Sequence record: LR756501.1
Length of the DNA: 64,000 nucleotides
Direction: 5' to 3' (one strand)
Positions within the stretch are counted from its first letter, which is position 1; every line of letters starts with the position of its first letter. Shown piece after piece: positions 61,039-63,769 of the stretch. The translations under genes were made by a program, and so were the position numbers. The notes beneath the pieces are model-generated. The model did not search any database, was not told the origin of the DNA, and was given only the letters and a program-made list of their open reading frames with translations.

Positions 61039-61089
61039 TTAAAACAAATTTCAATTATTAATATATAAATAAAAAAGGAGAAACAAACA

Positions 61090-61473
61090 ATGTCGTAGAT
61101 TTACAAATTAATCGTAGTAACAAGACAAGATCTTACCCCTGGCTATCAAGCCACACAGGCAACTCACGCCGCATTATTATTCGCACAAGAATTTCCATAG
61201 ATTTATGAGCAGTGGTCAAAAGACCCTTATTTAGCTTTGCTTTCTGTTAAGAATGAGCAAGAGCTTCGTATTCTCATATCCAAATTAGAAAAATCCAAAA
61301 TCAAATTTTCAGTATTCAGGGAACCTGATATTAACAATCAGATTACCGCTATCTGTATTGAACCTTCTGAAGCATCCAGAAAGGCTACTAGCTCTTTGCC
61401 CCAAATGTTAAGAGACTTGAAGACTGAGAATCAGATTGATAAAAATAATTACGTAAAGGAGGAAGTATTATGA
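61090..61473 (+). CDS. Pth2-family peptidyl-tRNA hydrolase with two in-frame TAG codons (codons 3 and 37)
   Basis: SD AAGGAG, then M-S-*-IYKLIVVTRQDLTPGYQATQATHAALLFAQEFP-*-IYEQW..LLSVKNEQEL..FREPDINNQITAICIEP..SSLPQM. TAGs at 61096-61098 and 61198-61200. The ORF track shows only the 3' part (61237-61473). Confidence 0.85.
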
Positions 61474-61736
61474 AAGAAATTAAATGTTACACATGTAAAA
61501 GTAGAAACTTAGATCCTGTTCCAGAAGATTTACCGTGTGTTGATTGTTGGAATGAAATGGACTATGTTAATTATGAACCTAAAACAACAGAAGAATTAAA
61601 AAAACAATTTGAAGATAGAAGATGGGATCTTTTAGATTGGTTGAACTCAGCGAGAGAAATAGACGATGAGGTATTAACAATATCAGATGAAATGGAATCA
61701 ATATTAAACGAACTTAAAGAAAGGAAAACAAAATGA
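61470..61736 (+). CDS. Small Cys-motif protein
   Basis: CYTC..PCVDC; SD upstream. Confidence 0.7.
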   Translation: MKEIKCYTCKSRNLDPVPEDLPCVDCWNEMDYVNYEPKTTEELKKQFEDRRWDLLDWLNSAREIDDEVLTISDEMESILNELKERKTK

Positions 61737-62541: not shown

Positions 62542-62918
62542 AAGAATTAGAAAATGTTAAAATGTTGTATGGGTCAGGTTGGTGGGACGGCCCTTTAAGT
62601 GGGCTTTGTGAATATGAAAATAAAATGTATTGGTTTAGTGTTCATCAAGAAGAAGAGTATGACGAAGAGAAAGAAGAATGGGGATATAGAATTCACAAAC
62701 TTATTGAAATAGAACCTTGGCAATTAGCTTATGAATTATATTGGCATAGTGTGTTTGTGAGTAATGTTTACAGAAATGCAAAATGCAGAACTCAATTTGA
62801 AGAAAATCTAAAAAATGAAAGATTCTATATGAAAGAAGATTTCTACAAGAAAAGGAAAAAAGAACATAAAGAGATAGATTATAGTAATAATAATGTTATT
62901 GGAACATTTAAATTTTAA
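62538..62918 (+). CDS. Hypothetical protein
   Basis: WWDGPLSGLCEY..MYWF. Confidence 0.7.
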   Translation: MKELENVKMLYGSGWWDGPLSGLCEYENKMYWFSVHQEEEYDEEKEEWGYRIHKLIEIEPWQLAYELYWHSVFVSNVYRNAKCRTQFEENLKNERFYMKEDFYKKRKKEHKEIDYSNNNVIGTFKF

Positions 62919-62934
62919 AAGAAAGGAGAACGAT

Positions 62935-62958
62935 ATGTCGTAGAGTAGGCCGCCTTAA
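62935..62958 (+). other. SD-led amber mini-ORF / leader: ATG TCG TAG AGT AGG CCG CCT TAA (M-S-*-S-R-P-P-stop)
   Basis: AAAGGAG 7 nt upstream of the ATG; first 9 nt identical to the Pth2 gene start. Confidence 0.55.
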
Positions 62959-63054
62959 AGGTGATACAGAAAACCAGCAAAACAAGTTTAATCACTATCG
63001 ACTTGTAAATAAAAGATAGTGAATATAAAACAACAAAAAATAAAATATAAAATT

Positions 63055-63471
63055 ATGGAAACAACATTAAAAGCTGGTGTTACGTACACCTATAATAGAA
63101 GTGAATTAGACAAGAAAATCTGTGATACTATTAATTTTATCAAAGAAGTAATCGCGAAGAATGATTACCAAGTAAAAGGAAACATTGAAGAACTTTACGT
63201 TCTTGAGTACCCTAACTTATCAATGAATCAGATGAAGAAGATTCAGAAATATTGTTACTGGATTCAGAGGAATCCTTCTTTGAAGAAGATCAATACTTTC
63301 TTTAGTTTATTATCAAAACTCTTTGGGGTTGAGAGAGTACAAGTGAAAATTTCTTTGAAAGAAGAAGCTATCCAGAAAGCTAAGAAAGAATGGATCAAAT
63401 CTAGAAATGAAGCCGATAGACTTTTAAAGGCTTATAAGGATGAAAAAGGTGATTTTTACAAAAGAAAATAA
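63055..63471 (+). CDS. Hypothetical protein (C-terminal KAKKEWIKSRNEADRLLKAYKDEKGDFYK)
   Basis: Start moved to the ATG at 63055; lies between the amber leader and the suppressor tRNAs. Confidence 0.75.
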   Translation: METTLKAGVTYTYNRSELDKKICDTINFIKEVIAKNDYQVKGNIEELYVLEYPNLSMNQMKKIQKYCYWIQRNPSLKKINTFFSLLSKLFGVERVQVKISLKEEAIQKAKKEWIKSRNEADRLLKAYKDEKGDFYKRK

Positions 63472-63524
63472 TTTTTTAGTTTAAAAATTATATGTATATT
63501 TGTGGAGTGAAATTCTCCACAAAT

Positions 63525-63597
63525 CCCTCGTTAGCTCATTTGGAAGAGTGTCAGATTCTAGCTCTGACGGTAGTAGGTTCGAATCCTACACGGGGGT
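63525..63597 (+). tRNA. Amber suppressor tRNA, anticodon CUA (copy 1)
   Basis: Acceptor CCCTCGT/ACGGGGG, D-stem GCTC/GAGT with GG, anticodon arm TCAGA-TTCTAGC-TCTGA (CTA at 63558-63560), T-arm GTAGG-TTCGAAT-CCTAC. CCA not encoded. Confidence 0.92.
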
Positions 63598-63602
63598 CAA
63601 AA

Positions 63603-63677
63603 CGGATAGTAGCTTAGCCAGGCCAAAAGCATCGGTCTCTAAAACCGATATCGAGGGTTCAAATCCCTCCTATCTGA
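63603..63677 (+). tRNA. Amber suppressor tRNA, anticodon CUA (copy 2, tRNA-Trp-like anticodon arm)
   Basis: Acceptor CGGATAG/CTATCTG, D-stem GCTT/AAGC, anticodon arm TCGGT-CTCTAAA-ACCGA (CTA at 63639-63641), T-arm GAGGG-TTCAAAT-CCCTC. Confidence 0.92.
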
Positions 63678-63769
63678 CTAAAAATAATCACCCTGATTAT
63701 CAACGTCTTCTTACGTTTGCCCCCATTTTAGAAAAAACTAGTAAAAAAGTTTAATATATACTCAGGTAT

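Follow-up and report, generated by a model that had tools for sequence, protein, structure and literature searches.

We describe a mini open reading frame (ORF) with an in-frame amber codon that probably, at about 65% by our own estimate, acts as a translated regulatory leader reporting amber (UAG) read-through, in which a ribosome stalled at an R-P-P tail would unmask the gene downstream. The mini-ORF lies in a 64,000-nt window that spans bases 627061-691060 of LR756501.1; this record, labelled 'uncultured phage', is 735,411 bp long, and its genome carries 59 tRNA genes. On the plus strand, the Shine-Dalgarno (SD)-like AAAGGAG is followed, after a 6-nt spacer, by ATG TCG TAG AGT AGG CCG CCT TAA (ATG at 62935-62937, TAG at 62941-62943, TAA at 62956-62958), and 96 nt separate this TAA from the ATG of a gene for a 138-aa protein at 63055. 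The first-pass annotation had given the strong SD, the ATG TCG TAG start and the read-through product MSxSRPP-TAA in this form, and had suggested a suppression sensor or leader for the downstream gene; peptide-level conservation, linkage to that gene and a helix with co-varying arms now argue for such a role. The whole case is made by sequence comparison and folding calculations, and what was computed here is the conservation, the peptide-level selection, the co-varying helix with its geometry, and the linkage of the parts.

Conservation of the mini-ORF and of its encoded peptide

Relatives were collected via the flanking proteins, giving 82 non-redundant regions upstream of homologues of the 138-aa gene. 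A TAG-containing mini-ORF is present in 78 of the 82, and a strict pattern (ATG, up to 7 codons, TAG, up to 6 codons, [R/K]-x?-P-[P/T]?-stop) in 67. Because the same pattern occurs in 0 of the 82 reverse complements and 0.1 times on average in shuffles, the mini-ORF is, by this comparison, far beyond chance expectation. The strict pattern has 3 occurrences in the 1.47 Mb that make up both strands of the source genome. Mini-ORFs of the relatives take the form M-x(1-5)-TAG-x(1-4)-[R/K]-x-P-stop, lie 52-164 nt 5' of the homologous gene, and persist in no fewer than 67 independent contigs, even where the neighbouring protein is down to 30% identical. The first-pass annotation had proposed this very search upstream of homologues of the 63055 protein, and had held that a lack of conservation in relatives would speak against its idea; the relatives contradict that outcome.

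The peptide is the conserved unit, because its arginine is written with five codons from two families (AGA 34, AGG 10, CGA 7, CGG 3, CGC 2) and its proline with all four codons (CCA 63, CCG 29, CCT 22, CCC 9). Length differences between mini-ORFs are whole codons, and the ATG, the TAG, the R-x-P tail and the stop share one frame. Wobble and conservative changes distinguish the relatives, as when the mini-ORF of the window is set beside ATG TCG TAG ATA AAG CCG CCC TAA in locus L043 and ATG TAC TAG GTA AAG CCG CCA TAA in L045. Other versions read ATG TCA TAG AGA AAT AAA TCA CCA TAA in L046 and, at 33% protein identity, ATG AAG CCA TAC TTA TAG ATT ATC CGA CCC CCA TAA in L042. Judged by codon use, selection on the mini-ORF is acting at the peptide level.

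Tallies per mini-ORF, and those for the helix below, cover 69 mini-ORFs or loci. Before the TAG, the head is 2 to 6 codons long, and the peptides have 7-12 residues (7 in the window). The base after the TAG is A in 54 and G in 12 (purine in 96%), the residue after it is Ile or Val in 52, and the distance from the TAG to the final stop is at least 4 sense codons in all 69. Tails in the strict set, each closed by the stop codon, are RPP (23), KPP (21), RGPT (6), RGP (4), RYPP (4) and RSP (3), with RAP, RDP, RNPP, REPP, RHPP and KSP seen once each; R-x-P tails make up 45 of the 67 and K-x-P tails 22. R-x-P tails followed directly by the stop have P, G, S, A or D in the middle, and an extra proline after the core is found only in the RYPP, RNPP, RHPP and REPP tails.

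Some loci depart from the pattern. In some the contig ends inside the mini-ORF, in others longer tails still have IRSP or IRGPT within them, and in others again N replaces R/K; one subclade has lost the mini-ORF and gained AAGGAG before the gene. L065 (2543-2990 of the 636-kb phage WNFQ01000001.1) and L138 have no mini-ORF, and their gene of the 138-aa family begins 9-25 nt after the stop of an amber-gated gene for a Pth2-type peptidyl-tRNA hydrolase (Pth2). This adjacency suggests translational coupling to the amber-gated Pth2 as another route to suppression dependence. In the short contig L132, about 150-115 nt 5' of the gene start at 422, TAA replaces TAG (ATG AAA GAA CGC TAA GTA CAA ACA CGA GGT CCG TAA), which may represent a decayed copy or an ochre-gated variant. 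The mini-ORF of L144, 93 nt 5' of the gene start at 2632, reads M-T-TAG-I-L-I-R-S-P-TAG and has a second amber, not TAA or TGA, after its R-S-P core.

Pairing of the leader with the downstream start region

Starting at the mini-ORF stop, 27 nt of the leader pair with the cognate downstream start region at a mean of -11.5 kcal/mol, as against -8.0 kcal/mol for non-cognate regions, and the cognate mean was matched in 0 of 5000 permutations; elsewhere in these leaders, 27-nt segments get no further than -5 to -6.5 kcal/mol. The arms co-vary, with GUUUCCAUAA facing UUAUGGAAAC in many relatives, AGUUGUUGUCA facing UGACAACAAC in L075, and further distinct matching pairs in L164, L152, L129 and L140. 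The arms of the window are AAGGUGAUAC..ACCAGC and GCUGGU..GUACACCU, and the minimum-energy fold of L043 has GUUUUCAUAAU paired with AUUAUGGAAAC. Going by these energies and exchanges, the helix is real and co-varying. The pairing of GUUUCCAUAA with UUAUGGAAAC may also explain the frequent M-E-T start of the protein.

The window and its six closest relatives share the arms given in Table 1, and in the window the duplex (-20.4 kcal/mol, z = -6.3) consists of the same pairs that appear in the minimum-energy fold. Duplex and permutation tests were used because an alignment-based fold put the 5' arm out of register; when RNAalifold was run on the window's clade, MAFFT misregistered this variable arm, and only CAGC:GCUG and the inner hairpin were recovered. 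The inner hairpin has one compensatory change within the window's clade and is absent in L045, while L043 has a different, perfect 13-bp hairpin at its site.

A ribosome was simulated as a mask reaching 15 nt upstream and 12 nt downstream of the A-site codon's first base, and the cost of opening the initiation region was computed. For positions -15 to +15, the mean cost over the 69 loci is 6.3 kcal/mol on the free RNA, 6.8 kcal/mol with the ribosome at the TAG and 2.7 kcal/mol with the ribosome at the final stop; under these simulated masks, a drop of at least 2 kcal/mol is seen in 52 of the 69 loci (Wilcoxon p ~2e-12). In most relatives the masked segment includes the AUG, leaders of the L043 and L046 types being examples. 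A ribosome terminating at the TAG would stay off the helix because at least 4 codons separate the TAG from the stop. The helix joins the sequence behind the presumed stall site to the downstream initiation region, as in SecM- or ErmCL-type control. By contrast with trp-type attenuation, no terminator-like site was found in the leader between 62958 and 63055.

Amber suppression, the proposed mechanism and its alternatives

In 51 of the 52 loci with enough flank, Pth2 is found 5' of the leader and on its strand. In the window, its gene has in-frame TAGs at codons 3 and 37, and its match to Pfam PTH2 (PF01981; residues 5-96, 32.1 bits with the cut-off at 23, TAG read as X) crosses the latter; Pth2 should therefore need amber read-through. 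It is the only gene in the 735-kb genome whose domain match spans a TAG. An in-frame TAG before the domain is found in all 58 Pth2 genes with an identifiable start and stands at codon 3 in 36 of them; in the homologues of L042-L164, M-x(0-15)-TAG precedes the hydrolase domain. Codon 37, the second TAG of the window copy, is E, N, D, H or K in relatives.

The mini-ORF and Pth2 also share their start, as the first-pass annotation had pointed out: both begin AAAGGAG...ATG TCG TAG, with an identity of 10 nt. The nonamer ATGTCGTAG has 2 copies in the window (0.17 expected) and 3 in the whole genome, two of which are the mini-ORF and Pth2 starts, 1.85 kb apart on one strand. When the residues before the TAG are compared between the mini-ORF and Pth2 of the same phage, the length is equal in 34 of 52 and the peptide identical in 16 of 52 (Spearman 0.61), figures that relatedness among the phages inflates. 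Because the two heads tend to match within phages, we regard the common start as a family-wide trait, and it possibly reflects a common read-through context. SD sequences are rare in LR756501.1, with AAGGAG before 1.6% of long ORFs and any 4-mer core before 7.5%. Despite this rarity, both amber-gated ORFs have AAAGGAG (that of Pth2 at 61075-61081); the mini-ORFs of more distant relatives have no SD.

Of 92 loci, 55 have a tRNA(CUA) gene within 3 kb on the same strand, placed 3' of the gene or 5' of Pth2. The tRNA(CUA), Pth2, the mini-ORF leader and the 138-aa gene are linked as a conserved four-part module of huge phages. Directly 5' of the first tRNA(CUA) of the window, at 63494-63524, a TAtaTTTG motif, which we take to resemble the Bacteroidota -7 promoter element TAnnTTTG, occurs with the hairpin TTGTGGAG...CTCCACAA. 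TAnnTTTG and a hairpin of unrelated sequence stand at the same place in L043, L045 and L046, and across loci the motif shows only a modest excess over control windows (17/69 as compared with 7/69).

Global recoding of TAG (code 15-like) was considered for this phage and rejected, as 35 of 819 long ORFs end in TAG under the standard code and candidate internal TAGs lie between domains or genes. The majority of 'in-frame' TAGs are genuine stops close to the ends of ORFs, or belong to spurious upstream extensions or to boundaries between genes or domains. TAG was read as X and no alternative code was assigned to the phage because the genome is not recoded as a whole; since TAG otherwise remains a stop in it, the suppressor tRNA would have a purpose other than whole-genome recoding. 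At 472420-474315 of LR756501.1, a UvsW-like helicase ORF ends at a TAG that is followed in frame by a T5orf172/MUG113 (GIY-YIG-like) domain, which is probably a separate endonuclease gene and not a read-through product. At 358528-358854 (minus strand) of the same record, adjoining a tRNA array, a frame of about 174 aa has only an RF-1/GGQ peptidyl-tRNA hydrolase domain (94 bits); its size suggests an ArfB-like rescue factor over a full release factor.

We propose that the leader reports which of two outcomes prevails at its amber codon. If the release factor wins at codon 3, the ribosome would leave after two residues and the sequence behind the mini-ORF would stay unreached. If tRNA(CUA) decodes the TAG, four more residues ending in R-P-P would be added and the ribosome would sit at the TAA, where R-x-P in the P site and slow termination at a C-terminal proline would produce a stall. 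The stalled ribosome would cover about 10 nt past the stop, corresponding to the 5' arm of the helix, and the start region so freed would allow translation of the 138-aa gene. Pth2 would be coupled directly to the same signal by the amber at its own codon 3, in the same sequence context. A possible, speculative rationale is that the output of products handling the side effects of suppression scales with suppression itself; as a further speculation, Pth2 may clear short peptidyl-tRNA(Pro) that the leader sheds, which would be all that is left of the Pth-substrate idea of the first-pass annotation. The odds are slightly better than even for a wider claim, namely that tRNA(CUA), an amber-dependent Pth2 and a 7-12-residue amber-gated arrest peptide unmasking the 138-aa gene form a self-contained amber-suppression module of huge phages; its leader would be the first natural arrest-peptide suppression sensor and would contain the shortest known RAP-type arrest peptide.

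Several points weigh against a read-through sensor that activates the downstream gene. We infer three of its steps, namely that tRNA(CUA) reads the TAG, that the ribosome is held at RPP-stop, and that the outcome is activation. The nearest genome paralogues of tRNA(CUA) are only 70-75% alike (Arg, Cys, Trp), too distant to fix its amino acid, and peptidyl-tRNAs of 7-12 residues may drop off instead of stalling. Known RAPP- and SecM-type peptides have about 100 residues or more, as against 7-12 in the phages, and the arginine that is irreplaceable in RAPP is K in about a third of the phage mini-ORFs. The helix is unconvincing (z > -1) in about 14 of the 69 loci. In the window's clade, the AUG is not masked and the 3' arm corresponds to codons 6-13. 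There, the cost of opening -15 to +15 barely changes, being in the window 3.8 kcal/mol on the free RNA, 3.8 kcal/mol with the ribosome at the TAG and 3.6 kcal/mol with it at the final stop. At the window locus, only the region from -15 to +36 responds (15.0, 17.4 and 11.5 kcal/mol, respectively), which makes the step from helix to repression the weakest one there, and repression by the helix is uncertain in this clade. The target is modelled as a helical protein without an informative family or fold match, and the leader was not covered by any of the RNA-library contigs found.

Some of these points would fit the same amber-gated leader with another output, whether repression, Rho or polarity effects on the tRNA(CUA) genes, or transit to the final stop without true arrest. 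In the window's clade, the helix covers +18 to +38 and not the AUG, the tRNAs lie directly downstream, and K replaces R in 21 tails overall. We nevertheless consider such an output unlikely. Most loci mask the AUG, a ribosome at the stop cuts the opening cost, and transit without a pause would leave the conserved R-x-P tail unexplained. Moreover, many relatives have their tRNA(CUA) upstream of the leader, and leader control of the tRNAs, which the first-pass annotation had also raised, is therefore not general.

That annotation had further thought of a deliberate generator of Pth substrate. In lambda bar minigenes, an SD precedes ATG-NNN-stop, and they are tied to peptidyl-tRNA hydrolase. The phage mini-ORF has these features in common with bar: under the standard code it is a strong SD with ATG-NNN-stop, and a Pth2 gene is always nearby, so that a two-codon M-S-stop minigene could shed peptidyl-tRNA, load Pth or titrate a tRNA. 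Unlike bar, however, the phage element is conserved in frame as a peptide after the TAG and has a head that ranges from 2 to 6 codons, and it accompanies the 138-aa gene, with whose start region it pairs, which makes a substrate generator very improbable. An RNA-only element, either the helix or a protein-binding site with an incidental open frame, is less probable still. The helix is real and co-varies, but two families of Arg codons, all four Pro codons, whole-codon length changes, the kept ATG-TAG-RxP-stop frame and the absence of the motif from the reverse strand speak against it. As for a chance ORF or an inert relic of a duplicated Pth2 start, the 10-nt identity between the starts would be expected of the latter, but retention at such low identity of the neighbouring protein, in so many independent contigs, renders both practically negligible. 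The sensor that unmasks the 138-aa gene upon read-through thus remains the reading we prefer.

Table 1. Features of the leader region and its neighbours (window coordinates).
Feature	Coordinates	Strand	Basis or remarks
Shine-Dalgarno-like AAAGGAG	62922..62928	+	6 nt 5' of the mini-ORF ATG; AAAGGAG(G) kept in the window's clade
Mini-ORF M-S-[amber]-S-R-P-P-stop	62935..62958	+	homologous mini-ORFs in 67/82 relatives
In-frame amber codon, proposed gate, then purine	62941..62943	+	spacing and next-base tally, 69 mini-ORFs
AGG CCG CCT (R-P-P), proposed arrest core adjoining the stop	62947..62955	+	tail tally, codon use, motif comparison with PMC12992588 and PMC7897499
5' arm of long-range helix, begins within the mini-ORF stop codon	62958..62979	+	duplex energy; same pairs in minimum-energy fold
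Inner hairpin TCACTATC...GATAGTGA, inside the long-range helix	62992..63022	+	fold and one compensatory pair change
3' arm of long-range helix, ORF +18 to +38 (codons 6-13)	63072..63092	+	fold and duplex
Downstream 138-aa gene, presumed regulated target	63055..63471	+	helical protein, conserved C-terminal YKxEKGDFYK
tRNA, anticodon CUA (amber suppressor), copy 1	63525..63598	+	Rfam gathering-level score
tRNA, anticodon CUA (amber suppressor), copy 2, type kept in relatives	63603..63678	+	Rfam gathering-level score
Pth2-type peptidyl-tRNA hydrolase gene, in-frame TAG at codon 3 (61096-61098) and codon 37 (61198-61200)	61090..61473	+	Pfam PTH2

The model of the 138-aa protein is confident and helical (pLDDT 86.6). 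Pfam and PHROGs gave nothing usable for the protein and its neighbours, and the model had no significant fold match in PDB or BFVD; a wide fold search returned helical-bundle matches only, with Z at most 6.5, which is below noise for helical proteins. There is no host or prophage lead because no relative of the protein was found in 185,579 prokaryote genomes. Among GenBank phage records, a DNA search returned the source record and its duplicate only, and a protein search four uncultured huge-phage records only. An Rfam scan gave gathering-level scores for the two tRNAs alone, with no match at E <= 1 in 62850-63130. Lake metatranscriptome contigs match the 5' part of Pth2 (61050-61356) and the gene at 61470 (61527-61685), although contigs from RNA libraries do not prove transcription; the Pth2 match stems from a relative and keeps ATG ACG TAG ATT. 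Phage DNA was present in several freshwater lake runs.

Comparison with known leaders and arrest peptides

The proposed logic has precedents in short leaders and in gauges of stop-codon decoding. In ErmCL-type macrolide-resistance leaders, a drug in the exit tunnel triggers the stall, upon which the mRNA is remodelled and the downstream start freed. The short leader peptide and the remodelling of the mRNA by a stalled ribosome are what we propose for the phage leader, whereas the trigger would be the decoding of an in-frame stop and not a tunnel-bound drug. The programmed +1 frameshift of prfB is a natural gauge of RF2 at UGA, placed inside the regulated gene itself. There, as proposed for the phage leader, the efficiency of stop-codon decoding sets expression, but through a frameshift, with neither arrest peptide nor suppressor tRNA.

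The tail of the mini-ORF resembles the arrest motifs of the RAPP/RGPP and SecM group, and by this analogy arrest may be expected here as well. ApdA, ApdP, ApcA and SecM arrest with R-A-P or R-A-G at the end of the peptidyl-tRNA, and the Arg is irreplaceable (PMC12992588, PMC7897499); structures of this type of arrest are available (PMC10951233). At the middle position of the ApdA/ApdP core, Gly is fully permissive and Ser, Asp and Pro partly so (PMC12992588, PMC7897499), with the change from A to P nearly or partly permissive in ApdP/ApdA (PMC12992588). The A-site residue in RAPP-type arrest is best Pro, then Cys, Thr, Asn and Ser (PMC12992588, PMC7897499). The phage leader resembles these systems in its R-x-P core (K-x-P in about a third of the tails) at the end of a small upstream ORF and has in common with them a helix over the downstream start region that a stalled ribosome could open. 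The permissive middle set (G, A, S, D, P) is also the set of middle residues in phage tails where the stop follows, and the RGP-then-Thr tails fit the A-site preference.

The differences are also clear. RAPP/SecM peptides contain a signal peptide or membrane segment and sense export, whereas the phage-encoded peptides have neither and the proposed input is amber read-through. RAPP has Pro in the A site, whereas the phage core usually meets a stop instead (RPP, KPP, RGP, RSP or RAP followed by the stop in the window and most relatives). The idea of stalling by an R-x-P-P motif put forward in the first-pass annotation fits the tail, whose R-x-P core is like that of RAPP/SecM. C-terminal prolines are stated to slow termination (PMC6412442; Hayes et al. 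2002, as listed in PMC12856214).

A ribosome held at a stop codon is used as a regulatory signal by TnaC, as proposed for the phage leader; TnaC holds peptidyl-tRNA(Pro) in the P site and its peptide ends in R-P-stop, as cited in PMC6412442 (refs 110-113). As presented there, TnaC differs in needing free tryptophan, in acting on Rho-dependent termination and in having no in-frame stop gate. Liu et al. 2011 engineered amber codons into the tna and trp leader peptides so that suppression by tRNA(CUA) turns downstream genes on, according to section 6 of PMC6412442. Those leaders, as summarized in that section, are man-made and transcriptional, whereas the phage leader is natural, conserved and apparently translational. 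Finally, the phage 'code change module' combines a suppressor tRNA with an aminoacyl-tRNA synthetase as well as a release factor (Borges et al., 10.1101/2021.08.26.457843). It resembles the present module in clustering a phage suppressor tRNA with translation-related genes and in using in-frame stops as a timing or conditional gate; the present module lacks the synthetase and the release factor and has Pth2, the leader and the helical protein.

Suppressor tRNAs of phages are well documented, as is stop-codon recoding, and the leader would be a concrete device for checking or timing the code switch. In its proposed layout, the amber stands at least 4 codons before R-x-P-stop and the helix can be opened only by a ribosome that has read through. 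As Pth2 is universally amber-gated in these phages, a peptidyl-tRNA hydrolase and a helical protein family would both be tied to suppression. A literature search found no paper describing such an amber-gated leader. If the proposal is true, arrest-peptide biology would extend to 7-residue peptides, to stop codons as sites of arrest and to an input not sensed by such leaders before. Among natural systems, the RAPP/SecM leaders, TnaC and the prfB frameshift come closest, and the nearest design is that of the engineered tna/trp amber leaders. What would be new is an arrest-peptide leader whose input is amber read-through, and in this respect nature appears to match the design of synthetic amber-controlled leader switches.
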